Part shown: piece by piece, positions 1-30,842 of the stretch
How positions within the stretch are numbered: the stretch's first letter is position 1
Layout of the letters: each line of letters opens with the position of its first letter
Origin: Macrostomum lignano
Lineage: Eukaryota
Direction: 5' to 3'
Assembly: GCA_002269645.1 (NCBI GenBank)
Contig: NIVC01001312.1
Span: 1 to 64,000, forward strand
Length of the DNA stretch: 64,000 nucleotides
Translations under genes and position numbers: made by a program
Notes under the pieces: model-generated
What the model was told of the DNA's origin: nothing
The model's database searches: none
The model's input: only the letters and a program-made list of their open reading frames with translations

Positions 1-3000
1 GCCAGCCTCCTCTTCATCTTCGTCATCCTCGGCTCTAGTTTCGTAGCCGTACTCGTCGAAGTCGGTGTCTCCGCCGTTGTCATATTCTCCAGTTTTCTGC
101 CTGGGCTGGCGCGGTCTCGGAGCTGGCAATCTACGTCCGCGTTCAATGGCGTCAGCAGGACTTCTCCGTCGCTTACTCTGCCAAGATCTTCGCTAGAGAT
201 GGCCACGCTTGTGGGTGGAAGTCGGCGGTAAAAAGCCAAAGTTCGGCAGGCCAACCGGCGCCACTTGCGGCAGGCGACGCTGCGCGGTACCGGCGTCGGC
301 GGCTCCGACCCGGGCGAGAGGTACGATGCCGTGACCGGAGCTCGCAGTAGGACGGGTCCGCGTCGAGAGGGCGGCAGCGGCTGCCTCTTGTGGCCAGGCC
401 GCATCAGTGCTGCCTCTGGCTCTCCTGGTTCAATGTTTTTGGAGTTCATTGAACTATTAAATAACCGTTTCTTTACACACTATAATTTAAATAAAAAGGT
501 AAGGTCATACCTGCATTGCAGTTCCCTCTGAATCGACTGTCACTACCGATGTCGTTTGCCGCAGTTGCCGCTGTCGGTGTCTGCAGAGACGGCGGCGCCG
601 ACGGTCTGTACGCCTGCGGCACGTACTGGAAAAAGTTGGTGCAGTCCTCGTCAATGTCGCTCACCAGAACGTCGCTGATCTCGCCATCGTCGCTCTGCAG
701 GCCGCGAAGTGCATCCAGGTCTGTGTCGCAGCCGCCATCGCGACCGCCGCGACCGCTGACTCCTCCATCTGTGTTGTCATCCTCGTCACCGCTGGTCAGA
801 CACCCACCAATGGAGTCGGAGACCAGTGAAAGCAGCGAGTCGCCAACAGCCGCACCGCCAGACGCTACTCCGCCGATGCCACTACTTGAAGTCGTCGGTG
901 GAGCTACTGGCGCCAGTCGAACGCTCCGCTGCGTTCCTTGGCCAATCGAAACAGTACTGGAGGCACAGTAGAGCCGCTGCATGTGTTCGTCGTTTCCAGC
1001 CAGTATTGGCGGCTGCGTTTGAACGCTGCGAGGGTTCTGCGCTGGTTGATGTCGCGGACGCTGTAGAGATCGGTGCCTCAATTGGTGGAAGCGACAAAGT
1101 GGCCCCAGCCGTGTCTGATGGCGGTGAAGTCTTCAAGCCTCCAGCGCCGCAACGGCTTCCTCCAGAGGAGTCACTCAGCCGACTGGCTGGCGACAAGATC
1201 GGAGGACTCGGGCGCGTATACTCGGGAAGTCTAGGTGACGGGCACTGGGCGTGCTGCGCTGGCTACCTTCGGCTGATGGGCTTGCTGAGGTGCGAGACTT
1301 TCCAGAAGCGCGAGCTGCGGCTACTGGCGGAGGAGGCCGGTATTGGTGCTGAGGCTGAGACTGGTGATGTCCACTGGTGTCGGAGTTCGATCGTGTCATG
1401 CTTGTGCTATGACCGTGACTGCCACGTGGAGGTCGCGGCGGAGGCGGCACGGGAGCCGATGACTTCACAGCCGCCATCTCCATGAAGATGTTTGCGCTAC
1501 TCTCAGCCATAGAATCGTACTCAGTGTCAGTGTACAGCGGGTTTCTGTGGCTCACCGGCCCCGGCATCTCAGCAGAGGCGGTAGCGGTAGCCGAAGCGCT
1601 GACTGCAGCGGCGTTGTCCGTAGCCTCGGTTGCTACTTCATCTTCGTCAGAGGTGACAATCTGATCGAGCGTGTCACCCGGCGGATGCCTAGCCGCCGAC
1701 TGAAAGGCGGCACTCTCGTGCATGAGGAAACTGCTCAGGGATGACCTACTGGCAACGGTGTCGCTAATTCTTCGAGGCCTCTGCGGCTTCTGCTGGTGAG
1801 GCTGCGGTTGAATCTGAGGCTGAAGTTGAGGTGGCCGGAGGCGGCGGTGGCAGAGTCGGCGTCTGCGTTTCAGCAGCGACCACGCTCCGTGTGTGCGTCT
1901 CGGGTATCGGCTTGAGGCCGGAACCGCTGCCGCAATGGGCAGAGTAAATGTTATTGGAGACTCCGGCCTGTAGCCCACCGAGAAAGCTTCTTGTGGCGAC
2001 TCTAGCGGCTATTTTGTCCGGCGGCTCGGTTGATGATGGTGTTGCTGACTGCCTTGATGCTGACGGAAGCCCGTGGAATTTACAGTCACTTGAGAATTTC
2101 GGCCTAGAGGACGTGGCCGGTCGGCCCTCGCGCAGCACCATGGCGCGAACTCGCAAGCCGTCAACGTTGTGCGACGAATGCTCGGTAAAGTCGAACTGCT
2201 GCTGAGCACCCGGTGCACACGTTCGGACACTAGGATCTGTCCGGGGCGGCCGCTGAGGCCAGCACTTTCGAAATAGATGCTGCCTGGCCCCAGATGTCGA
2301 AAACTGGCCTGGAGCCGCCGACCACGCCGCAGAATCCGGGTCCGAGGTCGATGCCAACCCGCATACGGATGCGGTCCTCGTACAGTGTGGCGTTGAGTTC
2401 AGCCACCCTGCGGCGCATCAGCTGGGCCAGCTGGACCAGACCGGTGAGGTGGAACAGCTTGCTGGCCGGGTTGTCCTGCAGTTGCGGATTCATGCCAACA
2501 GCTACTACATAGTTTTCCCCAACTGTGCGCACTTTGACGAGCTCCTGGTGTCGGTCGGCACGTTGAATTAGCTCGTCCAGCTCGCAGATGACGTCATTGA
2601 GCACCCGGATGCTCTCCTGGACAAGCAGGGGAGCCTCAGTGCCAGGAGCTGGCTGCCAATCCGGTAGATTAGCCCACAGGATGCCCAGCAGCTGGTACTC
2701 TTGGGCGTACAGATCCTGTGTTGGCGAGAGACGTTAGGGGAGGGCATCAAAAGAGCACACAAAGGCGCACGGATATGCAGGCAAAAATCCACAGGATGTA
2801 CAGACGGCCCTGACTTTCTTATTGGCAGGCATTTCTCACTCTGTGACCTGGGGCTTTGGCCCTCATGGGCGATTTTTCGTGCCAAACGTCAGGTAAATTT
2901 TTTCACGAGCCTCAAATTTGTGTGGCCCAGGTACTTTGGTGCCTGGAGTCAAACGCCTTAACCCCTGAGCTTCTCTGTCAGTAAAAACGGTTTTCTAGCT

Positions 3001-6000
3001 TTTTGCTAAATTCCTACGCACTCCACATCCCTCTGGCTCCCTGCTGCACAGGTCGAAACTCGAAGGCTTTCCCGGCTTCAGCCCAGCATACTCCCAACTG
3101 GGGAACCGAAGTTATGACTGCTACCGAAACCGCGCGCGTCAAACTCCCAAACCCCCCAGCCATAGTGAAGTTTTCTCCTCTCCAGCTAGCTCTGATGACT
3201 CACCCAAGCTCGAATGCGGGCACGCGAGGCACGCGCAGATATGCATATATTGATGAGGAATCGGGCAAGTTTTTCCTATAGTTCCGCGTCGCTTTTTTCG
3301 GCTTCATTCCCTGCGCAACAACCGGCAAACCCCCACCGGCACTAGGTGGCAGGGGCAGGCTTTGGCTTTGGCATGCCCCATCCATCAAGGCATTCGGTAA
3401 GGTTTGCTGGGCCAGAGTGGATGAGGGGAGGGCATTTCGGGCCTCTAGTGCGACGCTTCGTCGTTGCGCGTCGGAGTTATGCTTATAATAATGCGTGGCC
3501 TGGCAACTGACCTCGAGTCTGTGCAACCCTCTCTATCTGTGTCTCTTATTCTATCAATATACATTACATGCCAAGTTCCCTATGTAAATATGAATAAGCT
3601 GTCTATGAATAAATTTGTCAGAAAAAATCGAACTCCTATTCTTCTGGTGAATTGCACACGACGTTACACTCGAATAGGATATTTCTGTCATTGCTGAAGT
3701 TGGGAGCTATTAGCTGATTTTAATAGATTAGATTAATTAAATAAGTGAAACCCGCTACCAGCTGTTCACCATCCTCACCACAGGATTTCGATAAGTCGTA
3801 TCCGTGAAATGCAGCGCAACGTGCTGCGGCAGCAGATTTTTCAGCAAACAGCAACTGGCCTCCTTGACCAGGAACATGTCGTGCTGGTTCTCGGCGGACT
3901 GAAAAAGTATTTGTTAAAAATGAAAGAGAATGATTCGATTTGGGCTGTACGAGGGTTGTAAGTCTGCTAAGTAGAAACGTTGATTTTTCTATTAAAAAGA
4001 AAATCTTTGCAAAATCCTCAATTAAAACACAACAGAATTGTGTTTTGAATTTTGAATTTACCACAGGAGAAGCAAATATGTGATTCATTTGCTATTCAGG
4101 ATCGGTAAACTCCGGCCCGCAAAGCCTTTCTATCCGGCCCTCGGGTCCTTTGAAACTTCACAATGGCAATCCGGCCCGCTCAGGGTTTGTGTCGCTTCTC
4201 AGCTCCCTACTCTCTAATCTCCTCCCTCTCCTCTCCTATTCCATCTTCTAATAGGTAATAGGCAGATGTGCAACCGACAGCTCGAGCCCGAGTAAATCTG
4301 AAGGTTGCGTACGGCTGTTCAGTCCAAAGACCCCCTAGAATTACTCCAGCTAATGCTGGCACCCATTTTACAGCTGGGTGAACTGAAGCAATGTAGAGTT
4401 AAGTGCCTTGCTCAAGAAGTCAAGGACAATAGATTGTTACAAGTGGGTCGAGAATGAAACCCCGGACCTTTCAGTCTCAATTCCGTCGCTCTAGCCACTA
4501 GGCTAAAACTCTAGGCTATAATGGAAGCTCACCTGCGACTTCCACTGGAACTCCTGTCGCTGGGCGAACTCGTGAAACCGAGAGTGCACGAAGATCAAGA
4601 TGGAGAAAGCGGTCAGGCAGACGAGGCCCCAGACAAAGGTTGGCACAGGGCCAGCTGACATGTCGTGAGCGGAGGCGGCCAGACCGGACAGACTCGCCAG
4701 CCCTCTGACATCGGAGTCAACCAGCGAGAACAGCGGACGATGCGTGACAGCTACAGTCAGGCCGAAGGTGGTGGACACGGCCACGAGCAGGAACAACTTG
4801 ATGAAGGAGGGCAGCGATGCGAACACAGCCACCAAGATCAGGCAGAGGGTGCCAGACAGGTAAATGAAGTCCGGAAGCGGGCACTGCAGCTCCAGTGAGT
4901 TGTCCGAGTCCTGCAGAATCGGTCCGTACGTGGTCCTGTTGCCCACTGTCGAACGGCAGCAGAACTGAAAACCGATGCCAAATAATCAATAAATTCGGTT
5001 GACAATCCTAAAACCAGCTCCAGCCCAAGCCCGACAGCACTAAACGCCAGCTCAGCTCACCACATTGGCCTGCGATACGGCGTACACAAACAGAACCGAA
5101 GTAATGATGACAACCACTCGTATGACGAATGAGCTCTGAATGTTGAATTCCAGGCACTGTCGATTGGAAATTGGTTGTTTTCACAATTACTGCATTGTGT
5201 ACAGTGAATGTAGATTCTTTCACGCGTGACTTAATAATCACCAATGAAATTGTTCAATTAATCTCTGAATAGTTGATGGGGCGCATAAATATCTACAAGG
5301 TAATAGATTAAAGTAACTGCCATTCAATATCTCATAGCCCAGTGGTCCAACTCGGCGCTCTGATGTGCCAGCGGCCCAGGCTCGATTTCAAGTGCAGTCA
5401 CATTAATTTGGGGCTGAATTGGAATCTCGGCTTGGCTCTGCTCGTGCAATTAACACCTTTGAAGGCCAACCCTAAAGACAGTGAAGTGTACATGCCTAAC
5501 AATAAATAAAGTTAGGGCCGCTGTACACTCCTGTGTGAGTGTGTGCCTGTGCGTATGACTGCGTACGCATCCGCGCGCTTGTGTGACATAACAAGCCATC
5601 CGTTCAAGGCCTTCAAATCTGGGACAAGATAGGTTCATTGGAGTCCAACTCAAACTTGATTTGAATTTGCTCACCTTAAGCCTGGCAGCCAGCAACACCA
5701 TGAGCATCATGCCAATCCAGGTGAACGCAATCATGAATAGCAGCAATAGCAGCATGGTTCTAAAATGGGGAAGGGTTCATTAATAATTAATTAAAACAGC
5801 TTTTGACAGCATCTCTACATTTGAATCGGTAAGTTGGAATTTTCTCCGCGAAGAGCTCACCTGGGCAGCACTGAAGCCTGAAGGCTGGCGCTAATTAGCA
5901 AAATGAATAGGGCCGCTAGCATTGCCGCTCCGAATGTGTGATCCTCCTGTCTGTGGTACTGGAATTCAAACGATTATTTTATTCGGTTGTTACGCAGTAG

Positions 6001-9000
6001 CTGTGGGGTTGCTAAGCGGTTGCTATACTATTTTAAAGCAATGTAGAGACTAGGTTGTATCTATCTGATTGATTACTGTTTAGTTACAATGCGGTTGGTA
6101 CGCAGTTGCTATGCGGTTGCCATACGGTTGCTATGCGGTTGCTATGCGGTTGCGATGCGGTTGCGATCCGTTTGCGATGCGGTTGCTATGCTGTTGCTTT
6201 GAGGTTGCTGAGATAGCTGTTTCTATCTCATTACTGTTCACGAGTTACGTAGTTACTATGCGGTTGGTACACGGTTGCTATGCGGTTGTTATGCTGATTG
6301 CTTTTTCATTACGTTTCTCGCTTGCTGTACAGTTGCTACACGGTTGCTACGCCGATGCTTTGTGATTGCTATGCGGTCGCTGTGCGGTTGCTATGCTATT
6401 TCTACGCAGTTGCTATGCGATTTGCTAAGCTGTTGTCAAGACTGAATTTCGAATTCTCAAACAAAAGCTATAATCAGACTTTCGGTTCGAGTTCAACTTA
6501 AGCACTCCCGCTCACCTCATTCTCTTTAGCCTGAGTTGAGAACTTCAGCGTCACCGGGTTCATGCTGGTTCGGCAGCGCCTCAGCACGGTTGTTGAGGCG
6601 CCGCTAGCAGCTACTTGACCACCGCAGCCTGAAGAGGTCGACGAAGTCTTGACGCTGCCCAGGCGGGTAAGTTCGGTGCCTTTGAACGAAGCCGCGTGCC
6701 CGTTCCCAATGAGAGGACTGGAGCTGCCACCGGAACTCCTGCTGCGAGGGTGGGTTCGAATATGTACTTTTACAATTTGTTTGAATACATTTTCCACGAG
6801 TTGTTAGGATTCTTACATTTTTCCTGAGGGCTGGCACTTCAGAAGTTCCTCGGTCAGCTTCTGAAAGATTTGTTAACATTTAAACTTGTGAAAGCATAGT
6901 TTTTACACAAATTCATAGATAGAGGCCAGCAGATCGAATTTAAGATGAGTGAGGTCCACTGACCTCCCCTATAGATAATTATATTGGGGTCAACTGACCT
7001 TCGCAATAGTTAACTAAATTGAAAGTGAAGTGACCTCTCCTTTAGGTTATTATCTTGGGGTTCAAATGACCCCCCCTATAGATTATTAGATTGGGGTCAA
7101 CTGACCTCCTTTTAGAAAATTCGATTAGGGGGGTCAACTGACCTCCCCTATAGATTATTAGATTGGGGGTCAATAATTAGATTGACCTACCCCATAGATT
7201 TTTAGGTTCGGTGTCAACTGACCTCCCCTAAAAATGGAGTCAGCTAAACTTCGCAATGGAAGTTCGATTAGAGGGTTGGTCAACTGACCACTCTATTGAC
7301 GATTTTCCCTGAAAATTCCCTGAAAATTCCCTGACCAGCTGTCAGAGTAGTCAATCAGCTGATTACTCAGCTTTGCTAAAAAAACTTGATCAAGTGCTTG
7401 CAGCCCGGTAATTACCATTCGCTGAGCCTGGTTGACTTTGGTCTCGCCAATGTACTGGAACGGCGATTCGCACTGGTGATTGGCAAACTGGCTCAACCGT
7501 CTGAGTCCTTCGGTCCGCTCCCCGTCGTCCAGATGATGCTGCTGTCTCGAGCTGCTCTTGGATGACTGCAATAGAAGAATACATTGTAGGAAGAAATTTT
7601 AGCTCCAGTAGTTTCCCCGAAGGTTGCTATGCGGTTGCTATGTGGTTGCTATGCCGTTGTTTTGCGGTTGTATGTTGTTACTATCCGATCACTCTGCGGT
7701 TACTATGCGGTTTCTATGCGGTTGCTATGCGGTTGCTATGCCGTTTTTTGCGGTTGCTATGTTGTTACTATCCGATCACTCTGCGGTTACTATGCGGTTT
7801 CTATGCGGTTGCTATGCGGTTGCTATGCCGTTTTTTGCGGTTGCTATGTGGTTGCTATGCCGTTGTTTTGCGGTTGTATGTTGTTACTATCCGATCACTC
7901 TGCGGTTACTATGCGGTTTCTATGCGGTTTCAATGCGGTTACTATGCGGTTGTTATGTTGTTGTTCTGCTCTTGCTGGCATTGCTATGCGGTCGCTGTGG
8001 TTGCTATATGGTTGCTATGCTATTTCTTGACTTTATAGTGTAAATCGACTCATTATACCTAGTTAAGGGCCGTTACAATCTCGCCGAACTTAAAAAAACT
8101 CAGTGGGCAACCCTTCATCTTCTCTCTGCTCCAACTCACGGACATGAGCTGCCGCGGCCGAACAATCACGGTCTCCAGTTTAGTTCGAACTCCGCCGTTC
8201 GCGCCCGGCCGATCCAGCAGGGGCCCGGGTTCGACTCTCAGGTCGGCGTCCGCCAGCTCCAGGTAGGTCGACTTAGACAGAAGAATGCGCCTGGTAGAGG
8301 AGAGTCTGACTGGTGAGGCTTGCGCTTCGAACTCTCACCCTTGCAATGAATTTAAGAATCTTACCTTTGATTCTGGATCAAGGGCTTTCAAAATCTAACC
8401 TCTGACCAAAATTGAAAAACAGAGAAGTTTCGAGATCTCACGCCTGAGATAACCTTGGGTGTCTCTCACTCTGAGATTAATTTAGGAATCTCATCCTGAG
8501 ATAAACTTAGAAATCTTACCCTTGAGATAAACGTAGAAATCTCACCCTGAGAAGAATTTAGAAATCTCAACCTTGAGATAAAATTAGAAATCTCACCCTG
8601 AGAAGAATTTAGAAGTCTCACTCTTGAAATAAAATTAAAAATCCTACCCTGAGATAAACTTAGAAATCTCATCCTTGAGATTAACTTAAAAATCTCATCC
8701 TTGAGATAAACTTAGAAATCTCACCCCGAGAAGAATTTAGAAATCTCACCCTTGAGATAAAATTAGAAATCTTACCCTGAGAAGAATTTAGAAATCTCAC
8801 CCTTGAGATAAACCTTGAAATCTCACCCTTGAGATAAACTTAGAAATCTCACCCTTGAGATAAACTTAGAAATCTCACCCTTGAGATAAACCTAGAAATC
8901 TCACTCTTGAGATAAACTTTGAAATCTCACCCTGAGAAGAATTTAGAAACCTTACCCTTGAGATAAATAGATCACATCTTCGATGAATTCAGAAATCTCA

Positions 9001-12000
9001 CCCCTGAGATTAATTGAGAAGTCTCACCTTTGAGATAAACTTAGAAATCTCACCCTGAGAAGAATTTAGAAATCTCGCCCTTGAGATGAATTTGCTATTC
9101 TCACCCTGAGATAAATCTAGAACTATCACTGAGGAATATCTAAATTCCACTTTCTAAACTTAATTCAATTCGCCCAGCTGTAGACTGTATGACAGCTCAC
9201 CCAGGCGGGCAGGCTTGCAGGAGGCGCCTGGCTATGACCACTTGCTCGCCCATGACGTCATAGGTGAGCCGGCATTTGCCCAGCAGGGCGGCGTAAGCTA
9301 CGCCCGAGTTGATGCCCACTCTGGCCTCCAGGGGCAGCTGTGAGCACTCGGAGAGATTCCTGCAAAATTGGGGGGGGGCGGAGTCGAACCATGGATCAAG
9401 GCTCAAGAGTCACCTGGGAGGTAAGTTGCGAATGCACTAAAGATTCGGCCTGTTTTACACAGAATATTCATAAAGCTTGCAGTGATTAAACTGCAGAGCA
9501 AATATCAAGTCCGAAGCCTAGGGATCATCTGATCCCCGTACAAGCTGATGGCTCATATCCTGTATATACAACCCAGACCTGTAATGGATTCCGATTCATT
9601 AACCCCAACCCCGGTCCATGCAGCAGGTGCTTGGAAAAGCCTGAACTACAAGTCTGTAACATCTGCTGTGCAGTCAGTAGGATTAAGCTAAACAGGCCTG
9701 GATTACACAGGATTAATCCTGCCGCAATTAAAACTCGCCCAATATTCGAGACTGACAATCCTCAAGCCTTCCCCTAGAAGCAGATAGCTATTGCCAGCGG
9801 CGGCACTCTGTATACATAGTTGGAAATAGTAACTGTGTCTTATCAAGTATAGCTATATGCCTGAAATAAGTTCCTAGGCTTTCTTTTACAAGCCGAATCA
9901 GTTTTGGGATGGTGAAGGAAAGAAAGAGGCTGAGGGCAATGCGTTGAGTGTGGAGTTTTGGGGTAAAAAATCCATAGTGGAGAGGCTGGGGAGCTGCTTG
10001 TGGCTGTGCTGGTTGCAGCCGTCTTTTGCTTGGAATATCGAACGGTGCGGAACTTGTTGCTTCTCCTTGGTTTGCCCCTGCATTGCTTGCTCTGCTCTTT
10101 TCCCCCTCTCACTCTCATCTCTCCCCTCATCTCTCCCTCTCATCTCTGCCCTCATCTCTGCCCTCATCTCTCCCTCTCATCTCTCCCTCTCATCTCTGCC
10201 CTCATCCTCTCCCTCTCATCTCTCCCTCTCATCTCTCATCTCTCATCTCTCCCCGCATCTCTCATCTCTTCTCTCTTCCTCTCATCTCTCATCTCTTATC
10301 TCTCCCTCTCATCTATCCCTCTCATCTCTGCCCTTATCTCTCCCTCTCATCTCTGCCCTCATCCTCTCCCTCTCATCTCTCCCTCTCATCTCTCATCTCT
10401 CATCTCTTATCTCTCCCTCTCATCTCTCCCTCTCATCTCTGCCCTTATCTCTCCCTCTCATCTCTGCCCTCATTTCTGCCCTCATTTCTGCCCTCATCTC
10501 TCCCCTCATCTCTCCCTCTCATCTCTGCCCTCATCTCTGCCCTCATCTCTCCCCTCATCTCTCCCCTCATCTCTCCCCTCATCTCTCTCCTCATCTCTGC
10601 CCTCATTCTCTCCCCTCATCTCTCTCCTCATCTCTCCCTCATCTCTCCCCTCATCTCTCCCTCTCATCTCTCCCTCTCATCTCTCCCTCTCATCTCTCCC
10701 TCTCATCTCTCATCTCTAATCTCTCCCTCTCATCTCTCCCTCTCATCTCTGCCCTTATCTCTCCCTCTCATCTCTGCCCTCATCTCTCCCCTCATCTCTC
10801 TCCTCATCTCTCCCTCTCATCTCTCCCCTCATCTCTCCCCTCATCTCTCCCCTCATCTCTCCCCTCATCTCTCCCTCTCATCTCTCCCTCTTATCTCTCC
10901 CCTCATCTCTCCCTCTCATTTCCCCCTCTCATTTCTCCCTCTCATCTCTCCTTCCCATCCCTCCTTCTCATCCCTTCCCTAATCTCTCCTTCTCTTTTCT
11001 CCGGCACATCCCTTCCCTAATCTCTCAATCTCATCAATCCCAATGATCTCCTTCTCATCTCTCTCGCGTCTCTCCCTCCCGCAGTAGCTGCCGCCAGCTC
11101 ACCCGATCATTTCCAGCAGAACCTGGCCAAAGCGAACAGCCAGAGTGGCGTGCTCGGCGCACTCGTGCGGGAACCCGATGGCGGCAGTGTACTCGTCGCC
11201 CTGGATTCGAACTCGGAACGCTTGATGCTCCTGCAAATGGATTATCGGGCTGGCTTTGAGTGCTCCTGTGCTCTCTGAGAGATGCTGTGTTGTCTCCCTG
11301 CTTCTCTCCACTCTCCCTCTCTTCATCTCTCCCGCTCTCGCTTCATCTCTCCGCTCTCGCTTCATCTCTCCGCTCTTCCTTAATCTCTCTACTCTCCCTT
11401 CATTCATCTCTTCGCTGTCCCTCCTCAATCTCTGTGCAATTTTGATTTACTTAGACCCAAAAAGTACGGCTAATGATTTCTCAAACTCAGCTAGCATAAT
11501 TGACGCAAATCTTTAGCCATGTTGCATTTGCAAAAACCCATTCTGCACTGGCCAATTCATGCAAAAAACTTTCTATTCAAGTTTCTAAAGAACCTCCCAC
11601 AGCACACAACACCCAGTCAGCCCCTCGGCAATTTGGATGACTCATCGCTGCTGCACTTCAAGCGGTCACTACCGCGCACAGACATACGCAGGCAAATGCC
11701 ATTTGCAATTTCTCTCTAAACCCTTTATTTGCTAAGCTGTCTTCGATATCTGCATACAACTGGCGAGATGAACTGCCGACAACTCTCCGGTTATTAATCC
11801 ATGTTTAGCATCGATTTATTACTGACTGTGACAGCTTCCACTGCCGTCTTTAGCTCTGTTTTCTGGCAAACAGTATTGTATCCTGCAGTGTTTTGTCACT
11901 TACGTAGGCTAATTGGTCCAGCCGACAGAACACCTGATTCATCAGCTTCACCGCGTCTGAGGCTGGGAAGCTGGCCGGGAACTTGGTGAGGCCAGAGATG

Positions 12001-15000
12001 CTGGCGCACATCAGGCTGCGGGGCGGTTGGTTGCTCCTGTGTGAGCGGTTTGTCTCAGTGTCTGGTCTAGTGTCTTAGTGTCTGATCTAGCGTTTGTCTT
12101 AGTGTCTGATCTAGTGTCTGTCTTAGTGTCTGATCTAGTGTCTGTCTTAGTGTCTGATCTAGTGTCTTAGTGTCTGTCTTAGTGTCTGATCTAGTGACTT
12201 AGTGTCTGTCTTAGTGTCTGATCTAGTGTCTTAGTGTCTGTCTTAGTGTCTGATCTAGCGTTTGTCTTAGTGTCTGTCTTAGTGTCTGTCTTAGTGTCTG
12301 ATCTAGCGTTTGTCTTAGTGTCTGTCTTAGTGTCTGTCTTAGTGTCTGATCTAGCGTTTGTCTTAGTGCCTGATCTAGTGTCTTAGTGTCTGTCTTAGTG
12401 TCTGATCTAGTGTCTTAGTGTCTGATCTAGCGTTTGTCTTAGTGTCTGTCTTAGTGTCTGATCTAGCGTTTGTCTTAGTGCCTGATCTAGTGTCTTAGTG
12501 TCTGTCTTAGTGTCTGATCTAGTGTCTTAGTGTCTGTCTTAGTGTCTGATCTAGTGTCTTAGTGTCTGATCTAGTGTCTTAGTGTCTGATCTAGCGTTTG
12601 TCTTAGTGTCTGTCTTAGTGTCTGTCTTAGTGTCTGATCTAGCGTTTGTCTTAGTGTCTGTCTTAGTGTCTGATCCAGTGTCTTAGTGTCTGTCTTAGTG
12701 TCTAATTTAGTGTCCTAGTTCCTGTCATAGAGTCTGATTTAGTGTATTTTTGTCTGTCTTAGTGACTGTCTTAGTGACTGTCTTAGTGCCTGTCTTAGTA
12801 ACTGTCTTAGTGACTGTCTTAGTGCCTGTCTTAGTGTCTGGTTTAGTGTCTGGTTTAGTGTCTTAGTTCCTGTCTTAATGCTTGTTTTAGTGTCTGTCTC
12901 ATCGCCTGTCTGACTGTCTTCTTGTCTATCTACCCGTCTGTCTTTCTTTCCGCCCAAGCTCCCTGTCCCCTTGAAGTCCATCACCCAGAGTCCCAACCTC
13001 ATGTACGGTGTCTGGTTGACCTGGGCCACCTTCCAGCCGAAGTTGCCATGCAGACAGTCGGCCCGCATGTCGTCCGTCAGGTCGGAAGGCACCACAGACT
13101 GCACCAGGCGTTCCTGTGGGAAGAGAAATGCACTGAGGTTGCGGTCTTGTTGCTATGGGGGGTTTGGGGGGCTCTCTGGGGCTGGTAAGGCAACACATGA
13201 CGCTTGAAGTGAAGCGAACAGCAGTGCTGGTGCGCCATACCTCTTCACGGAGCCTGCAGTTTGGACAGTCATCGGCTAGACTTTTATAGCTAATTGCAGC
13301 CTCAGCAGTGCGGAGACTTAGAAATTCCAATAATTTATAGCATAGCCTTGAATCTGCAGCCATACACAGGTCCCAACTCGAAATTTTATAACTGAAATTC
13401 CAACTAGCAAATTGGCCTTTCAGTTTCTCAGCCATGGTTACTCTATCCTGAAACCCATTCCTTAGATTGAAGAAATCCTAAACTACCTTGGAGCATTCAG
13501 AACCATAGCCTATACCAGCTTAAGTCTCTATCTTCAATATTATGATCCCAAATCCCCGTTGTACATTATGATCCCAAATCCCCGTTCTACATTATGATCC
13601 CAAATCCCTATTCTACATTATGATCCCAAATCCCTGCTCTACATTATGATCCCAAATCCCCGTTGTACATTATGATCCCAAATCCCTGTTCTACATTATG
13701 ATTCCAAATTCTTATTCTACATTATGATCCCAAATCCCTGTTCTACATTATGATCCCAAATCCCTGTTCTACATTATGATCCCAAATCCCTGTTCTACAT
13801 TATGATCCCAAATCCCTGTTTTACATTATGTTCTACAATTCCTGTTCTACAATAATACTAATTCTACATTATAATCCCGAATATATATTCTAGATTATAA
13901 TCCCGAATCCCGTTCTACATTCTAATCCCAAATCCCCATTCTATATTCCAATCCCAAATCCTAAATCTACATTATAATCCCAAACCCCAATCCACTTCAT
14001 GATCCAAGAATTTATTAATTTAAATTGACTCACTCAGTCGGCACATCGAACTATCCAGTGTCACGATGTACTTTAAACGTAAAAGCCAACAAATAATTTG
14101 AAATCCAATCCATTCTGAGATGCAATGCCCAAATAACTGAAAAAGGATTTATCTTTTTGTAGGAGACGAGATTTCCACGTCATATCAGCTGCGGACCGCT
14201 GGTCAGATCCCTTCTCCCATGAGACACGACGAAAATTTTCCCCAAAGTACCGCTGCACCAGACTCCCAGCTGCATCATTGCGAACTCAAAATCTAGAGAG
14301 ACAGATTCTATCCCCTGTCTGATTAGGAGGAAACAGATTTATCCTCATTTGTAAAGTGCAACCCCCTTGGAGACGAAATGTACTTTTAGACACATCGGTT
14401 CCTCATCAATCCCTTACTAGCTTGCTCCCGCTCAATCAATCTTGCACTCCCACTGGGGATGAAAAAATCCTCTTTTTCTTTAGGGAAAAAAGTTTGAAAG
14501 TCTGACTTAACAACCGAATTTTTGTCACCTCTATTTGTTCTTTGCTTTTTGCTGCTTTTTCTGGCTGTACTCTTGTAGGAGAAACAATTAATGCTGTTTA
14601 TAAGAGATACAAGATAATCCCATTATTGATAAAGTTTCTGGAATGGCGTACAGTGTAATAATTCCCATTTCCAGATCCCCAAGATCCCCGATTCTATAAT
14701 TTTTATGCCTAGATCCTCAAATTCATAATCCCTATAATAAAGTCCTAAATTTCATAATTCCCATAGCCAGATCCCCAATTTCATAATTCCCATATCCAAA
14801 TCCCAAATTTCGTAATTCCCATATCCAAATCCCCAATTTCATGATTCCCATATCCAAATCCTCAATTTCATAATTCCCATATCCAAATCCCCAATTTCAT
14901 AATTCCCATATCCAAATCCCCAATTTCATAATTCCCATATCCAAATCCCAAATTTCATAATTCCCATATCCAAATCCCAAATTTCATAATTCCCATATCC

Positions 15001-18000
15001 AAATCCCAAATTTCATAATTCCCATATCCAAATCCTCATTTTCATAATTCCCATATCCAAATCCCCAATTTCGTAATTCCCAAATCCAAATCCCCAATTT
15101 CACGATTCCCATATCCAAATCCCCAATTTCACAATTCCCATATCCAAATCCCCAATTCCATAATTCTGCCTAGCAACTAGCTCACCAGCTTGTAGGTCTC
15201 GTCCTCCAACTGCAGCTGATTGGCGATGCAGGCCTTGGTTTCCAGGAAACTGCGGCGCAACAGGCTGTCGCGAAAGCGCTGCAAACAGGCGCCACCCAGA
15301 TTGGCGCAGAGCAGCACAAGTGATGAGGCGATCAGCTGGAAAATTGGGAAAGAAAAAGTGATGTTGTTGTTGACTCTTGCTGGAGAAATTTAGGGTCATT
15401 CTCAAGGGTGATATTCTATGGGTGAGATTCGCTGAATTGAGGCTCTGTGGGAGGGGGTGAGACGCTGAGAAGTCAATCAAATTCTAAGCGGTTGAGATTC
15501 TGATAGGTAAGATTTGACGGGTAAGAATCTGAGGGATGAGAATCTAGACGGTGAGATTCTAAGAATCTAAGGTTTGAGATTCTGAAGTGTAACATTTCGA
15601 GGGGTAAGATTCTGAGAGGTTAAATTCTGAGGGATGAGATTCTGAATTATGAGATTCTGAATTGTTAGATTCGGAAGAGTGAGATTCTGAAGGGTGAGAT
15701 TCTGAAGGGTGAGATTATGAAGGGTGAGATTCTGAAGGGTGAGATTCTGAAGGGTGAGATTCTGAAGGGTGAGATTATGAAGGGTGGGATTCCTAAGGGT
15801 GAGATTCTGAAGGGTGAGATTCTGAAGGGTGAGATTCTGAAGGGTGAGATTCTGAAGGGTGATATTTTGAATTGTGAGATTCTGAGTGATGTGATTCTTA
15901 AAGATAAGATCCTAGGGGTGAGATTCTGAGAGATGAGATTCTGAATTCTGAGATTCTGAGGGGTGAGATTCTGCGAGGTAAGATTCCAAAAATGAGTTTC
16001 CATCGGGGTGAGAGTCAAATGAAGAAGGATTTTAATTCTACTGAATGAAACTCAGCGAAACGGCGGTGATTTACGAGTATCAGACTTGATTTTGTAAGGA
16101 TTAAAACTTGAATCGAAATTTTATCAATTCGAGAATTTACATGTACTTTAAAAAGCCTATTTTAAAGAAATCCAAAAGCTTTTGAGCATCGATGGGAGAA
16201 ATTTAAGGATGCTAGACCCAAAAACTCCCAGCCAACACGGAGGGATAAAAAACAGAGATAGAGAGAGAAAACTCGAAAGTTTGCCTTCTGAGGTCACTGG
16301 CAAACCCCACTTGACCTGACCCTCGCTTCCACACAGCACAGCTCCCATCGGATCGATTTAGACTGGGAAATTGGAGGGCCTCCATGATAATCGGTTTTCA
16401 AGTTTAATAGTCACAGCATTGGAATAAGAGTTCAGTTGTCCTGGGTTAAGTTTCTAAATTGCTCAAAGCATTCTCGTCCCATGTGCAATTGGTTGCTACT
16501 CAGCCGCATAATTTGCCTCGGTGCTTTCCTGTCGACTTTTCTGGCAAAAATTCCCTTTTTTCTGATGTGCTACTGTCTGTATAACTAGCAGGATTCTCTG
16601 TCTAACAGGTGTCTAGCTTCCGTCTAACAGGTGTCTAGCTTCCGTCTAACAGGTGTCTAGCTTCTGTCTAACAGGTGTCTATCTTCTGTCTAACAGGTGT
16701 CTATCTTCTGTCTAACAGGTGTCTATCTTCTGTCTATAACAGGTGTCTATCTTCTGTCTAACAGGTGTCTATCTTCTGTCTAACAGGTGTCTATCTTCTG
16801 TCTAACAGGTGTCTATCTTCTGTCTAACAGGTGTCTATCTTCTGTCTAACAGGTGTCTATCTTCTGTCTAACAGGTGTCTATCTTCTGTCTATAACAGGT
16901 GTCTATCTTCTGTCTAACAGGTGTCTATCTTCTGTCTAACAGGTGTCTATCTTCTGTCTAACAGGTGTCTATCTTCTGTCTAACAGGTGTCTATCTTCTG
17001 TCTAACAGGTGTCTATCTTCTGTCTAACAAGTGTCTATCTTCTGTCTAACAGGTGTCTATCTTCTCTCTAACAGGTGTCTATCTTCTGTCTAACAGGTGT
17101 CTATCTTCTGTCTAACAGGTGTCTATCTTCTGTCTAACAGGTGTCTATCTTCTGTCTAACAGGTGTCTATCTTCTGTCTAACAGGTGTCTATCTAAAAAG
17201 AAGGCATCTACATTTATCTAACAGGTAGGTGTCTATCTAACAGGTAGGTGTTTATCTAAAAAGTAGGTGTTTATCTAACAGGTAGGTGTCTATCAAACAC
17301 AGGGACCGCAGCACCAACATACAGCGCAGGTCACCTGTTCAACCCACACTGTATATTACTGATTATTGATTTCGGAAACATCGAATTCTATAATTCTATG
17401 TACGCCGTTCTTCAAACTTCAGCCAGTCAGTTAATTCCTAGAAAGAGATTTTATGCGCTCCGACTAGCAAATAGGATTGAACGGGACAGCTGTTGGATCT
17501 GCTACACTGGCTGGCATATTGGTTGGCTGTTCAGTCTGAATCTATCAAATTTGCGCAGTTAAAGGCGAAGGGACTTCAAAGCAGCTCGCAAAGTCATGAC
17601 TGAACCTCACATAGCCCCCACTAGAGACAGCTCTTGACGCAGGGGAAATCTTCCTCGTTTGTATTGCGCAGATACTCGTACGTCGTGAATGATTCGAAAC
17701 CATTCTGAAACAAGGTGATGCTACGAGAAGTATTGCCGGTTTGGACGATGCGGGCATTGTTAATCCCATAAGGGCTACGGGACGTGCAGGAAAACGCTGG
17801 TTTTTAAGAATTTTACCGACGGACCGAGTGCGTTAAATGTGAACTGTTGGCCTCATTCAGACCCTCGGAGATCTACACATGAAGACACTCAGAGAGTCAC
17901 CCATGAAGGCACTCAGAAAGTCACACATGAAGACACTCAGAGAGTCACCCATGAAGGCACTCAGAAAGTCACACATGAAGACACTCAGAGAGTCACCCAT

Positions 18001-19672
18001 GAAGACATCCAGAAAGTCACACATGAAGACACTCAGAGAGTCACCAATGAAGGCACTCAGAGAGTCATACATGACGACACTCAGAGAAGAGTCACCCATG
18101 ACGACATTCAGAGAGTCACCCATGAAGACATTCAGAAAGTTACCCACGAAGACACCCAGAGAGTTACCTGTGAAGAAACTCAGAGAGTTACCCATGAAGA
18201 CACTCAAAGTTACCCATGAAGACACTTTAAGACTCACCCATGACGACACTCAGAGAGTCACCCATGAAGGCACTCAGAGAGTCACACATGACGACACTCA
18301 GAGAGTCACCCATGAAGACATTCAGAAAGTTACCCACGAAGACACCCAGAGAGTTACCTATGAAGAAACTCAGAGAGTTACCCATGACGACACTCAGAGT
18401 TACCCATGAAGACACTCAGAGAGTCACCCATGACGACACTCAGAGAGTCACCCATGAAGGCACTCAGAGAGTCACACATGACGACACTCAGAGAGTCACC
18501 CATGAAGACATTCAGAAAGTTACCCACGAAGACACCCAGAGAGTTACCTATGAAGAAACTCAGAGAGTCACCCATGACGACACTCAGAGAGTCACCCATG
18601 ACGACACTCAGAGAGTTACTCACGAAGTCACCCAAAGATGCGCCTCTGACGCTCATTTTTAGCACATTCTATGCTTTAGCACCTAGCGGCCATCTCTGGT
18701 CATTTCATTGGCCCGCTTCTAACAAAAGTCTGTACTCACAGAAGTCCAGTAGCTCTCAGCGATATGCTTGCGAGCAACGCTGTCAGCTCTGCTTGGCTCC
18801 ACAAGCTGCTGCCTCGTGAGCACAGCCGAGCACGCCAGGTAGCAAAGGCTCAGAACCGATCCGTAGAGCGCCGTGGCCAGCAGCTGACCAGGCAGCAGGC
18901 AGTAGACTGCGAACACCGCGAATGCCACCTGCCACAGCCCGTCGGCCATGGTAAAAATCTGCTGTTGCTGGACTGTTGAAGCGCTGACCCAGCTGACGGG
19001 GAAAGCCGTGGCAGCGATCAGGCTGACTAGAAGCAGCACCAAAGCGCAGCCGGTGGACGTGTGCTCGGGCCGCATCAGCCGGCTGTGTAGGAACACCGCG
19101 GCAAACAGGAACGCCGAGGCGGAGGCGACGTACACCGCGGCTTTGTAGGAAAACCGGTGACCGAATGCGTAGTCGATTGACGTCAGCGCCAGCAGCAGGC
19201 AGACGTAGGTCAGCAGGAAGCGGCTTAGCATGGCCCGCTCCAGTCGGAAAGCGTACTTCCGGTACAAACGTTCGACGCTCCAGTCGACGAAAGCGTCGCT
19301 GTTGCAGAAGCGGCACAGGCGCATCCGGAGTCGGCGCCAACGGGAGCGACCGCCGCGGCCGCCCTCGCCAGCGTCGGACATTGTCGACGAGGCGGCGTCG
19401 GCGTACGAAGCCAAGTCGGTGTTCAACTCGGCGAAGAAGTGCGGCGCGAGCAGCTTCCGGTCGGAGCGATCGCTGCGCGGCAACGGCTGCTGATGGTGGT
19501 GATGCAGATGACTGCGAGGCGGGTCCGTGTCGATCAGAGAATGCTGGTTGCTGCCGCTGCCGAGGCTAACTGAAGCCGCCGCAGTCACTGGGGGTGTGCC
19601 GTTAGCGCATTGCGCGCCGCCTCCTCCGGCTAGGAGACTTTGATAGCCGTTGCAGTGCGAGTGGGAGCTCAT
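1..19672 (-). CDS. Transmembrane adenylyl cyclase-like protein (M1-C1-M2-C2 plus long low-complexity tail), multi-exon, 3' end beyond window; probably catalytically impaired
   Basis: Hand-spliced exons with GT-AG and consistent phases: 19672-18740, 15335-15186, 13113-12998, 12036-11904, 11230-11103, 9359-9201, 8290-8140, ~7568-7337, ~6732-6515, ~5960-5861, ~5760-5673, ~5157-5060, ~4965-4534, ~3899-3768, ~2716-510, ~425-<1. Motifs: RRSFLETKACI, ERLVQSVVP, RIQGDEY, ARVGINSG, GRILLS, MNPVTLKFS, NLLPQHVA, DLYAQEY, RMRVGIDLGP, VFDIWG. Several apparent 1-nt frameshifts in the 2716-510 exon. Confidence 0.9.
4097..4255 (+). mobile_element. hAT-like non-autonomous element end followed by CT-rich tract
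   Basis: Starts CAGGATCGGTAAACTCCGGCCCGC; the same sequence family occurs inverted at 49370-49694. Confidence 0.45.
4265..4505 (-). mobile_element. tRNA-headed SINE with CORE/MIR-like central domain (copy 1)
   Basis: Minus strand starts TAGCCTAGTGGCTAGAGCG (A-box-like) and contains CTTGAGCAAGGCACTTAAC...CAGCTGTAAAATGGG; related copies at ~21536-21750 and ~45434-45694. Confidence 0.65.
5337..5590 (+). mobile_element. tRNA-derived SINE family 2 (copy 1, partial)
   Basis: Near-identical to 24173-24480 and the inverted copy at 41277-41641; A-box-like CCCAGTGG and B-box-like GGCTCGATTTCA. Confidence 0.75.
5990..6430. repeat. Degenerate GCGGTTGCTAT (~11 bp) minisatellite
   Basis: Directly visible; the same unit recurs at 7620-8030. 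Confidence 0.9.
6955..7290. repeat. Degenerate repeat with GGGGTCAACTGACCTCCC core
   Basis: About 7 dispersed tandem units in an intron of the cyclase-like gene. Confidence 0.8.
7620..8030. repeat. GCGGTTGCTAT minisatellite with higher-order duplication
   Basis: Directly visible. Confidence 0.9.
8330..9150. repeat. ~26 bp minisatellite CCCTTGAGATAAACTTAGAAATCTCA
   Basis: Directly visible. Confidence 0.9.
10105..11430. repeat. CT-rich low-complexity repeat (CTCATCTCTCC), flanking the 11103-11230 exon
   Basis: Directly visible. Confidence 0.9.
12055..12900. repeat. TAGTGTCTGTCT / TAGTGTCTGATC minisatellite
   Basis: Directly visible. Confidence 0.9.
13535..13990. repeat. ~28 bp minisatellite TACATTATGATCCCAAATCCCTGTTC
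   Basis: Directly visible. Confidence 0.9.
14690..15160. repeat. ~26 bp minisatellite AATTTCATAATTCCCATATCCAAATCCC
   Basis: Directly visible. Confidence 0.9.
15400..16010. repeat. 15 bp minisatellite GAGATTCTGAAGGGT
   Basis: Directly visible. Confidence 0.9.
16600..17290. repeat. 21 bp minisatellite TCTAACAGGTGTCTATCTTCTG
   Basis: Directly visible. Confidence 0.95.
17870..18640. repeat. 24 bp minisatellite ACACTCAGAGAGTCACCCATGAAG
   Basis: Directly visible; produces spurious repeat ORFs. Confidence 0.95.
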
Positions 19673-21535: not shown

Positions 21536-21750
21536 ATATGCTCAGCCGCAGCTATTATGCGTAAGCGCATTTGAAGGCTGCGTCGGCTGTTCAGTCCAAG
21601 GACTGGGGGGGGGGGGTCGCTATACACACCCTCAATTACCCCAGGTACTCATTTTACAACTGGGTGAACTGAAGCAATGCAGAGTTACATGTACATGTAC
21701 GTGTCTTGCTCAAGGCCACAAGTTGTTCAAGTGGGTCGAGAATCGAAACA
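21536..21750 (-). mobile_element. CORE-like SINE (copy 2, partial, with TACATG micro-insertion)
   Basis: Shares GGCTGTTCAGTCCAAG, CATTTTACA.CTGGGTGAACTGAAGCAATG and GTGGGTCGAGAAT with 4265-4505. Confidence 0.6.
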
Positions 21751-24172: not shown

Positions 24173-24480
24173 TGTGGGCCGCAGCCCAGTGGTCCATCGC
24201 GGCGCTCTGATGTGCCAGCGGCCCGGGCTCGATTCCAAGTGCAGTCACGTTAATTTTGGGCTAAATTGGAATCTCGGCTTGCATGGCTCTGCTCGTGCAA
24301 TTAACGCCATTGAAGGCTGCAGTCCCCAAGGCACAGTGAAGTGTACATGCCTAAAGTTAGGGCCGCTGTACACTCCTGTGTGAGTGTGTGCCTGTGCGTA
24401 TGACTGCGTACGTATCCGCGCGCTTGTGTGCCTGCTCAGGGGAGTCGGCGGAATGGGCAGCAATGCCTCTCGCCGATTGT
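24173..24480 (+). mobile_element. tRNA-derived SINE family 2 (copy 2)
   Basis: Head GGGCCGCAGCCCAGTGG...GGGCTCGATTCCAAG; matches 5337 and 41277 copies. Confidence 0.8.
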
Positions 24481-25037
24481 GCAACAAGGTAGCTTGAGTG
24501 TTTAAGTGTCCACACAGCCCTCTGACTCTTAAACATTGTGCTAATTTTACAAAGCATTTTCTGATGTCAGATAACCGGAGCGTGTAAAATGACTCATTGG
24601 AGGTGGGACATGTACAGCAATTGGTACAGTACGCTCAAACCATGCAACCAATTGATATGATAGGCGCACCACACACTACTACTGTTCTAATGAACAAGTA
24701 GCCAGGCACAGACACACCACTCTGCATGTACCACACTGCCTAATCGCATAAAATTTTGTTTCTTGCCTGACGCGTTACAGTCACATAGGCTAAGCTGCAA
24801 AGTTAAGGGCTGGGGTTTTCTCAATCGCCTAAAATATACAATTTAGGCATCACCCACATAGCCCACTAGCCCACTGCTACCTTCAGTCAGATATCTGACA
24901 ATGGAGTATTGAAAATTGATCCAGCATAAAAGCTGCAACAGCTAAATATTTCTCATTTCATCGCGCTACAAGCTGCTGTAAAATTTGCCTTTCTCTTCAA
25001 CTGTCAATGCTGGATGGTTGCCAGCCTCTCGTTGGCT

Positions 25038-25045: not shown

Positions 25046-25145
25046 AGCAAAAAAATCAATAAAAACCAGCTGCATTTAACTGCGACATCTATCTGGATAT
25101 TTGACCGTCAACAAGGAGTGCCACAGTGGAGCTTTCAAACTGAAG

Positions 25146-26054
25146 ATGCTGTTGCAGCAAAGTCGCATTGTTCTCACAATAGTGCTGGTTGAGGCAGCCA
25201 AGGCGGTCCTAACTGCCGCATCAGCTCACTGTTTCAAATACCGTCGGTACTCGTTCAAACCGATTTGCCCGAACCCCGCGAAGTCCCTAAAGACTGCGAA
25301 CGAAATTGACTGCGCAATCGCCGCGTCCATGCTAGACGCCGGGATCAGTATTGCTGTGACGTCATCAAATGGAGATCCGTGCCGGGTGACCGACGCCCTG
25401 TGCCCTCGCTACGAACTGTGCTTCACTGACTGTGCCGTGCTTATGCCAGTCAGCATGGTGAACACCCTTGAGCATCTTGTCATGAGCGTGAAGAGCGGCT
25501 GCGGTCACAAAGTGTTGAAGGTGCTGACAAACCCTGACCCGCCGCAACCTGACTACGTGATTCAACCGGCTCATCCGGATGCCGCCATTCTACCGGACAC
25601 CTTCCGTTCCGCTCTTCTGGACGACATTCCGCGCTTGATCTCCAGCCTGACCCACAAGCAGTTCATCGTGCAGCTGTACAAGAACTCAGAAGTCGTAGTC
25701 AGACTTGTATTCGACGTTGGGACGAATTCTGCCAGCGTTGACATCACGAACTGGTTCGCTAAAAACAGACTCATCGAGTCCTGGCCAATTACCGATATCG
25801 CTTCTCGAGACACCAACAAGTTTAGCATTGCCGGAGACAACAGTGAGCAGGTCAGCAGACATTTTTTTATCAACTACTTTTACGGCCACTGCCCCGGCGA
25901 CACTGGATTCGTGGCTGTACTGGATATGTCTGACGGCTGCAGTCACTGGAGCTTCACTGACCCTATTCCGAAGATTGTCTACAATACTAAGCCTGACCAG
26001 CCGTGGTCAACGAGCTCAATGTATGCCGACTACATCGCGGTGCTGGTGCGCTGA
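25146..26054 (+). CDS. Intronless putative secreted Cys-rich protein (~302 aa), PAN/apple-like N-terminal region plus uncharacterised C-terminal domain
   Basis: Long non-repetitive GC-rich ORF (track 25101-26054); hydrophobic N-terminus MLLQQSRIVLTIVLVEAAKAVLTAASA; Cys-rich segment; AATAAA at ~26309. Confidence 0.75.
   Translation: MLLQQSRIVLTIVLVEAAKAVLTAASAHCFKYRRYSFKPICPNPAKSLKTANEIDCAIAASMLDAGISIAVTSSNGDPCRVTDALCPRYELCFTDCAVLMPVSMVNTLEHLVMSVKSGCGHKVLKVLTNPDPPQPDYVIQPAHPDAAILPDTFRSALLDDIPRLISSLTHKQFIVQLYKNSEVVVRLVFDVGTNSASVDITNWFAKNRLIESWPITDIASRDTNKFSIAGDNSEQVSRHFFINYFYGHCPGDTGFVAVLDMSDGCSHWSFTDPIPKIVYNTKPDQPWSTSSMYADYIAVLVR

Positions 26055-26080: not shown

Positions 26081-30842
<4,762 letters not shown>

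Follow-up and report, generated by a model that had tools for sequence, protein, structure and literature searches.

A highly divergent membrane adenylyl cyclase homologue with replaced catalytic residues as a probable pseudoenzyme

Membrane adenylyl cyclases, including the Group I Ca2+/calmodulin-responsive enzymes (AC8, AC1 and Drosophila rutabaga) and also Ac78C and AC5/AC9, are built of an N-terminus, six transmembrane (TM) segments, a first cyclase domain (C1), a linker, six further TM segments and a second cyclase domain (C2). A catalytically competent class III adenylyl cyclase has two metal-binding Asp residues in C1, and a Lys/Asp pair together with the transition-state residues Asn and Arg in C2. 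The gene described here lies on the minus strand of a 64,000-nucleotide stretch of DNA (contig NIVC01001312.1, positions 1 to 64,000), referred to below as the window. It has the same layout as these enzymes, and its nearest canonical relatives by sequence are those of the AC8/AC1/rutabaga group, the best named matches being AC8, AC1-like and rutabaga-type proteins. The window gene differs from them, however, in its identity of only ~30%, in the replacement of the first metal Asp, the substrate Lys, the Asn and the Arg, and in a Glu at the Ser position of the IGSTYM motif. It also has a family-specific N-terminal motif and a characteristic TM7–TM9 block, and no orthology to a single isoform is assigned.

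That a class III cyclase dimer can have one degenerate site is well established. Degenerate class III halves, such as the forskolin site (pseudo-site) of transmembrane adenylyl cyclases (tmACs) and the non-catalytic site of NeoR/RGC, are retained as regulatory nucleotide- or ligand-binding sites (PMC12264004; PMC4174876). The window protein is like these systems in that its cyclase-fold domains are retained after the loss of catalytic residues. In tmACs and NeoR/RGC, however, one of the two sites is active, whereas in the window protein the canonical and the pseudo-symmetric sites are both incomplete, so that the whole protein, and not one site, would be non-catalytic. A limited literature search of partial coverage found no description of a wholly degenerate full-length 12-TM adenylyl cyclase under selection. 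The explanation that we favour, with some confidence, is that the locus encodes a divergent homologue, nearest to AC8/AC1/rutabaga, which belongs to a pseudo-cyclase subfamily and has been retained as a non-catalytic pseudoenzyme, the deletions at the end of its C2 domain being likelier errors of assembly.

Gene architecture and catalytic positions

The gene model comprises 16 exons running from 19672 to 2230; in a splice check on the window DNA, all introns were GT-AG and the phases were consistent. As assembled, the model encodes a product of 1161 residues in a spliced open reading frame (ORF) of ~3.5 kb. The 15 upstream exons (~3 kb of coding sequence) are intact with canonical splice sites, and the window gene has no lesion outside its 3′ end. 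A preliminary description had placed the gene at 2230-12036 with about 15 exons. That extent covers the C1-to-C2 part only, as the gene starts at the ATG at 19672 and is about twice the length then given; its multi-exon structure stands, with the count corrected to 16.

A Kyte–Doolittle scan, which reports hydropathy only, found six hydrophobic segments at residues 147–328 and six at residues 733–942, one block before each cyclase domain. Pfam AC_N matches residues 122–380. Guanylate_cyc (PF00211) matches two stretches in one chain, with 173.6 bits for the frame-corrected model, and the exon translations as assembled give E-values of 4e-18 and 2e-13 for the cyclase domains. The best matches among solved structures are AC8 (8buz; E-values of 6e-35 for C1 and 9e-42 for C2), AC5 and AC9. 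The two cyclase domains and two six-helix blocks (helices from hydropathy) of a membrane 12-TM class III adenylyl cyclase are all present. The hydrophobic segments, Pfam domains and structure matches therefore identify the locus, at the level of sequence, as a highly divergent membrane adenylyl cyclase homologue. TM segments and folds had been described as otherwise preserved, and this is true of the 6+6 hydrophobic segments and the two cyclase domains, but not of the C2 frame, which is broken as assembled. An Rfam scan of the window gave no match.

The window protein reads LMCASISGLT in C1, where AC8 has ILFADVKGFT and AC5 has ILFADIEGFT; Ser405 (AGC, 12002-12000) occupies the position of the first metal Asp. 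The second C1 metal Asp is retained as Asp449 in RIQGDEY (GAC, 11197-11195). In C2, VKVRTVGENY stands against EKIKTIGSTY, with Arg1063 (CGC, 2529-2527) in place of the substrate Lys, and FDIWGQAASISKV stands against YDIWGNTVNVASR, with Ser1147 (TCT, 2277-2275) for the Asn and Val1151 (GTG, 2265-2263) for the Arg. The adenine-specifying Asp1140 of C2 is retained (2298-2296). These codons bear out the earlier reading of the motifs, in which FADIxGFT had become CASISGLT with Asp to Ser, the second Asp was kept in IQGDEY, KTIGS had become RTVGE with Lys to Arg, and both the transition-state Asn and Arg had gone from C2. Alignment to profiles gives the same residues: Ser, Arg and Asp in the C1 region and Arg, Asp, Ser and Val in C2.

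To assess the constancy of these positions among relatives, 1.84 billion protein cluster representatives were searched exhaustively by HMMER, the query being the C2 exon. The best 149 non-self matches were aligned to C1 and C2 profiles, and canonical residues were counted among the aligned ones. The first metal Asp was canonical in 122/122, the second in 126/126 and the Lys in 149/149; in C2, the Asp and the Asn were each canonical in 148/148 and the Arg in 146/148. Set against these best 149 relatives, the window protein alone deviates at as many as four of these positions. The four replacements are, on these counts, non-random and far beyond chance. The protein departs from the canonical state in 3/3 residue-level features: the C1 Asp pair, the C2 Lys/Asp pair and the C2 Asn/Arg pair.

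The pseudo-symmetric second site is likewise incomplete, having Asn and Glu at the metal positions of C2 and Val at the Asn position of C1; with these residues it cannot, as predicted from the alignment, replace the canonical site. The first Lys of the VKGKG motif, which we take to contact the gamma-phosphate, is Asp in the window gene and also in its M. lignano relative P0154 (described below). The Ser of IGSTYM, Glu in the window protein, presumably lies in the forskolin pocket; the meaning given to both residues is our assumption, and the two changes are weakly supportive of a loss of catalysis. Taken over all positions, the predicted loss of catalytic competence is well supported.

The exons of the window gene are as follows.

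18740..19672, minus strand: exon 1, opening with the ATG at 19672-19670 and encoding TM1–TM5 and the cytosolic N-terminus, which bears the family motif FFAELNTDLASYAD.
15186..15335, minus strand: exon 2, TM6 and juxtamembrane helix (LIASSLVLLCANLGG...RRSFLETKACIANQLQLEDETYKL); aligns to AC8 from residue 324 onward.
12998..13113, minus strand: exon 3, lead-in to C1, ERLVQSVVPSDL...
11904..12015, minus strand: exon 4, start of C1, LMCASISGLT; Ser405 (AGC, 12002-12000) at the first metal-Asp position.
11103..11230, minus strand: exon 5, C1 segment RVRIQGDEY; Asp449 kept (11197-11195).
9201..9359, minus strand: exon 6, C1 segment RVGINSG...YDVMGEQVVIARR; pseudo-site with Val in place of the Asn and the Arg unchanged.
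8140..8290, minus strand: exon 7, end of C1a (RILLSKSTYLELADADLRVEPG...).
7416..7565, minus strand: exon 8, variable C1b linker; frame backed by the P0154 linker (ESPFQYIGE vs EAPFDYLAE).
6817..6860, minus strand: exon 9, short C1b exon (KLTEELLKCQPSGK); from the mapping of P0002, with splice sites and phase checked.
6516..6741, minus strand: exon 10, last part of C1b, reaching MNPVTLKFSTQAKENE directly before the second membrane domain.
5861..5958, minus strand: exon 11, TM7.
5675..5759, minus strand: exon 12, TM8; of all stretches the one best conserved in the paralogue of M. lignano (83% identical over 89 nucleotides).
5061..5156, minus strand: exon 13, CLEFNIQ loop and TM9.
4533..4964, minus strand: exon 14, extracellular loop with an NRT sequon; TM10–TM12.
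3779..3898, minus strand: exon 15, lead-in to C2 (LLKNLLPQHVALHF).
2230..2715, minus strand: exon 16 as assembled, C2 domain with Arg1063, Asp1140 (kept), Ser1147 and Val1151; ends in TAG at 2232-2230.

The exon 1 motif FFAELNTDLASYAD is common to the M. lignano proteins P0001 and P0154, with 88% nucleotide identity over 42 nucleotides, and the exon 2 intron position is common to P0154.

Relatives in Macrostomum lignano and selection

A word-indexed search with exon 1 found one M. lignano fragment (P0001), and a two-sequence profile then led to the full-length protein P0154. This is BOX15_Mlig009489g1 of M. lignano, 1656 residues long; the relatives are Mlig009489g1, Mlig012584g1 and Mlig012968g1 (UniProt A0A267E4U7 and others). 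The C1 region gave no match in a word-indexed homologue search, and no annotated protein for the N-terminal half of the gene was found by these insensitive searches. The close relatives recovered by word-indexed and profile searches are M. lignano proteins only; the word-indexed searches are insensitive and yielded a single genus, and the family may extend beyond it. Among the matches listed in the exhaustive C2-exon search, all but one (P0002, a model of the window locus itself) are canonical cyclases, with an identity of at most 37% and mostly 25–32%. P0154 falls below the best 150 of that search, and other family members may do so as well.

P0154 aligns to the window protein from end to end at ~39% identity and has an intact 1656-residue ORF in several copies; two sister copies at least 90% identical to it bring the paralogue to three copies in M. 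lignano. The window gene and the P0154 family have in common the N-terminal motif FFAELNTDLAxYAD and the motifs GLWQVA, PASKLFHL, GPGQxLVSE and QQFDF. The best-conserved part is the TM7-TM8-CLEFNIQ-TM9 block, which is 61% identical between the window gene and P0154. At least 10 of the 15 introns of the window gene occupy identical alignment positions in the M. lignano gene. Mlig009489g1 and its copies are thus like the window gene in architecture, in intron positions (at least 10) and in the loss of the same four catalytic positions; they differ in having an extra intron inside C2, a fused TM7/TM8 exon, an insertion in C2 and an intact frame at the end of C2, which in the P0154 family is continuous through ...DLWGEAARVADALAGAGGPGQLLVSEPVHSLARQQFDFAPHPAVWLDG... 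in a single exon. A peculiarity of the paralogue is an exon ending in ...MALRDQ at L001 25234/25235, which is followed by GCGAGT and not by GT; this may be a GC-AG intron or a quirk of the annotation.

In the proteins P0154, P0158 and P0159 the first Asp has become Cys, and the Lys, Asn and Arg have become Arg, Arg and Ala, respectively. The first C1 metal Asp and the C2 Lys, Asn and Arg are replaced in all family members examined, and the replacing residues differ between the window gene and the paralogue (Ser/Cys, Ser/Arg and Val/Ala), only Lys to Arg being identical. By sequence comparison, the window gene and the M. lignano proteins form a small subfamily, whose known members are so far confined to Macrostomum lignano; should the window itself come from M. 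lignano, its cyclase gene and Mlig009489 would be paralogues of old standing, not orthologues. The M. lignano proteins are already in databases under the automatic name ‘adenylate cyclase’, and such annotation of catalytically degenerate proteins is a practical warning.

Selection was estimated by the Nei–Gojobori method on a protein-guided codon alignment of the window gene, with two Gs restored, and P0154. The proportions of non-synonymous and synonymous differences (pN and pS) were 0.425 and 0.641, with a synonymous rate (dS) of ~1.4; the ratio of non-synonymous to synonymous rates (dN/dS) was ~0.43 overall, 0.23 in TM7–TM9 and 0.50 in C2, a rough figure given that dS is near saturation and probably underestimated and that the alignment was protein-guided at ~39% identity. 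The recent copies P0154 and P0159 differ by 36 synonymous and 30 non-synonymous changes over 1648 codons (dS 0.027, dN 0.0083, dN/dS 0.30). From the ratios of 0.30 between recent copies and 0.43 between the window gene and its paralogue, the family is estimated to be under purifying selection now, long after the loss of the catalytic residues. Both ratios are well below 1.

It might be supposed that the protein is an active nucleotidyl cyclase with non-canonical residues, in which Ser405 or a neighbouring acid would act with Asp449 in metal binding, Arg1063 would stand in for the Lys and Lys1150 for the Arg. One metal Asp and the adenine Asp are indeed kept, the change of Lys to Arg is conservative, a Lys directly precedes the lost Arg (SISKV) and the paralogue has an Asp two residues past the lost one (ACIDGLT). 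We nevertheless regard such activity as improbable: four invariant or near-invariant positions have changed together, by comparison with the best 149 relatives, and the Lys of VKGKG has gone too. The replacing residues are, moreover, unlike between the paralogues and not conserved, which argues that these positions are no longer constrained.

Frame of the C2 end

As assembled, the C2 frame runs ...DIWGQAASISKVLASAAAPDRS and then ends at the TAG at 2232-2230. The remainder of C2 (GPGQILVSERVHRV..QQFDFTEHSSHNVDGLRVRAMVL) is encoded in two other frames, GRPGQILVSERVHRVL in one and QQQFDFTEHSSHNVDGLRVRAMVLREGRP in the other; when joined, they align to AC8/AC9. Within the last ~55 C2 codons, two single-G insertions, at 2247/2246 and 2207/2206, are needed for the family frame, and DNA alignment to the homologous M. 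lignano paralogue exon shows exactly two single-base gaps in the window, at the same two places. The affected features are as follows.

2246..2247, minus strand: frameshift 1, one G short of the family frame (GCGGCCG^CCCCGG), from the paralogue DNA alignment, the P0002 mapping and three-frame AC8/AC9 homology.
2206..2207, minus strand: frameshift 2, one G short (CACCGGGTG^CTCAGCAG), from the paralogue DNA alignment, the P0002 mapping and AC8/AC9 homology.
2100..2229, minus strand: out-of-frame C2 remainder, ILVSERVHRV / QQFDFTEHSSHNVDGLRVRAMVLREGRP, equivalent to beta7–beta8.
1..2099, minus strand: C-terminal tail region, ~60% GC; P0002 reads a long low-complexity tail off the left end of the window, which in the window shows many single-base frame breaks.

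A tiny intron bridging the C2 frame changes was also considered. The sole GT...AG candidate has 29 nucleotides, and it was rejected in favour of 1-nucleotide deletions on the paralogue DNA alignment.

The protein P0002 (1468 residues, UniRef), the top match of the exhaustive search, is a model of the same locus; it is 99% identical over C2 and holds both Gs. When mapped residue by residue on the window, it falls into long exact blocks with essentially no substitutions and ~20 one-base frame switches of both signs. Several of the junctions reuse a base, which could not happen if the model had been derived from the window itself; P0002 thus rests on another version of the sequence at this locus. 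Nearly all differences between the two versions are insertions or deletions (indels) of a single base, and assembly error is therefore likelier than real pseudogenisation. A pattern of single-base indels without substitutions is, to judge from the two versions, that of long-read assembly error rather than of divergence. Where the paralogue can serve as arbiter, it favours the window in exons 7 and 8 and P0002 at the two C2 sites, and the two deletions in C2 are more probably indel errors of the assembly than genuine lesions. Look-ups of exact products, made for P0001, P0002 and three ORFs of the window, gave no match; those that sought the frameshifted ORF in independent assemblies are uninformative. 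The locus illustrates how, in GC-rich exons, indel errors of one base can look like pseudogenisation.

The changes of Asn to Ser and of Arg to Val are also read in P0002, a database model with an intact frame, and are independent of the frameshift, because both single-base gaps lie downstream of SISKV. If the first frameshift lay before SISKV, the apparent loss of the Asn and Arg would be an artefact of reading in the wrong frame. This possibility was rejected: PGSIYFESAGLS, the translation of the other frame, has no match, the gap falls downstream in the DNA alignment, and QAASISKVLASAAGPGQ is read without a change of frame in P0002.

In positions 1-2230 (minus strand), the part of the P0002 tail within the window, ~700 residues, shows ~20 single-base frame changes, suggesting that at least one of the two assemblies contains indel errors. 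Conservation of this tail with P0154 is too weak to arbitrate these other differences in frame between the window and P0002.

The same lesions might be taken at face value: this copy would then be a genuine recent pseudogene, in which two real 1-nucleotide deletions truncate C2 and cut off the long C-terminal tail, a loss that the near-identical sister copies of a recently duplicated genome would make tolerable. Two frameshifts within 40 nucleotides, the premature TAG at 2232-2230 and the additional breaks of frame that appear when the tail is compared with P0002 agree with this, as does the want of an annotated protein for the N-terminal half in word-indexed searches, and the three paralogue copies of at least 90% identity in M. 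lignano make redundancy plausible. Yet the 15 upstream exons (~3 kb of coding sequence) are intact with canonical splice sites, and the nearly substitution-free single-base indels that separate the window from P0002 are a signature of sequencing error. The C2 remainder, too, is still recognisably AC8/AC9- and P0154-like although out of frame, so that any lesion would have to be very recent. On balance, recent decay of this copy appears somewhat unlikely, though it is the most serious alternative.

It is very improbable that there is no functional gene here and that the locus is an old relic of an adenylyl cyclase whose ORF has been kept by chance or by generous modelling. Such a relic would account for the premature C2 stop and for a GC-rich tail in which each strand has ORFs in more than one frame, but not for a spliced ORF of ~3.5 kb in 16 exons with perfect GT-AG sites and consistent phases, nor for 12 correctly placed hydrophobic segments, at least 10 intron positions common to an intact paralogue and a dN/dS well below 1.

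Possible function and other features of the window

The pseudoenzyme interpretation is supported for the family, as judged from its sequences, and probable for the window gene. Of the earlier proposal that a catalytically dead cyclase has been retained, the catalytic loss and the retention of the family (shared losses, intact 1656-residue ORF, dN/dS of 0.43 and 0.30) hold; for this copy, which is frameshifted as assembled, a plain pseudogene stands as the alternative. The particular roles suggested earlier, those of a scaffold, a G-protein sink or a receptor-like membrane protein, are speculative, the sole hint being that conservation is highest in TM7–TM9.

According to the pseudoenzyme interpretation, the replacements would predate the split of the window gene and Mlig009489, an old split with synonymous sites near saturation. 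A single loss before the split would be the simplest reading, because the losses are shared and the change of Lys to Arg is identical. Since then the ORFs, at least 10 intron positions, the 12 membrane segments and both cyclase folds would have been retained under purifying selection. The product would be unable to make cyclic AMP by the two-metal class III mechanism and would have a non-catalytic role resting on the membrane domain, with TM7–TM9 best conserved, on the N-terminal motif and on a still-folded C1–C2 dimer. This dimer may bind nucleotide without turnover, as it keeps the adenine Asp and one metal Asp and has an Arg in place of the Lys.

Several points weigh against a retained pseudoenzyme. 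The premature stop in the assembled copy removes the last two strands of C2, as would be expected of a pseudogene, and M. lignano-type genomes hold genes in several near-identical copies, so that one copy could really be dying. The shared loss of residues could be convergent, given that the replacing residues differ except for Lys to Arg. A single genus is represented, in searches of low sensitivity, and the ratio obtained for the window gene and P0154 is subject to the saturation noted above.

A more specific proposal, which is tentative, is that the working part of the protein is its 12-TM domain. The TM7-TM8-CLEFNIQ-TM9 block and FFAELNTDLAxYAD would then sense ligands or bind partners, for instance by forming heteromers with active cyclases or by capturing G proteins, and the degenerate C1–C2 pair would be no more than a nucleotide-binding or conformational module. 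On this proposal the protein would be a natural case of separation of function, relevant to the old debate on whether the membrane anchors of adenylyl cyclases act as receptors. If the pseudoenzyme interpretation is true, the family is a natural test of membrane-anchor and C1–C2 scaffold function without catalysis. Macrostomum is amenable to RNA interference and transgenesis.

Elsewhere in the window, at least four ionotropic glutamate receptor-like genes are arrayed in tandem over positions 34981-62900, some on one strand and some on the other. Examples of their positions are:

38119-38547, plus strand: ionotropic glutamate receptor-like.
44695-45384, minus strand: ionotropic glutamate receptor-like.
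52831-53370, plus strand: ionotropic glutamate receptor-like.
60379-60831, plus strand: ionotropic glutamate receptor-like.

The exons for the N-terminal domain are nearly identical among the copies of this array; Pfam Lig_chan scores above the cut-off and ANF_receptor below it. Fragments of Tc1/mariner-type transposases are found at 61124-61477 and 63353-63586 (both minus strand), with DDE_3 just under the Pfam cut-off, an HTH_23-type match above it and a weaker Tc3-type match. Between the cyclase gene and the receptor array, an uninterrupted ORF of 324 codons, not of low complexity and with no Pfam match, occupies 25080-26051 (plus strand).

An interspersed repeat of ~150 nucleotides has three copies in the window (4330-4497, 21644-21747 and 45539-45686), which are 77–82% identical to a stretch of paralogue intron 1 (L001 10911-11067). 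This likeness hints at Macrostomum or a near relative as the source of the window, possibly M. lignano itself, as do the origin of all the relatives recovered and the listing of P0002 in UniRef alone, which it has in common with two of the ML2-era A0A1I8 entries of M. lignano (P0001 is listed in UniRef and MetaClust). A second dispersed repeat, at 5453-5776, 24248-24634 and 41328-41567, encodes ...RHTSARIRTQ... in all three copies, two of which continue ...SYAQAHTHTGVYSGPNF...; one copy lies in cyclase intron 12. Strand-asymmetric micro- and minisatellite arrays occupy introns and intergenic DNA at 9900-11100, 12070-12950, 26550-27730 and 27940-28360, and account for the extreme GC skews at 10–12 kb and 28–30 kb. 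The array at 12.1–12.9 kb resembles an intron array of the M. lignano paralogue (~71% identity, simple sequence).

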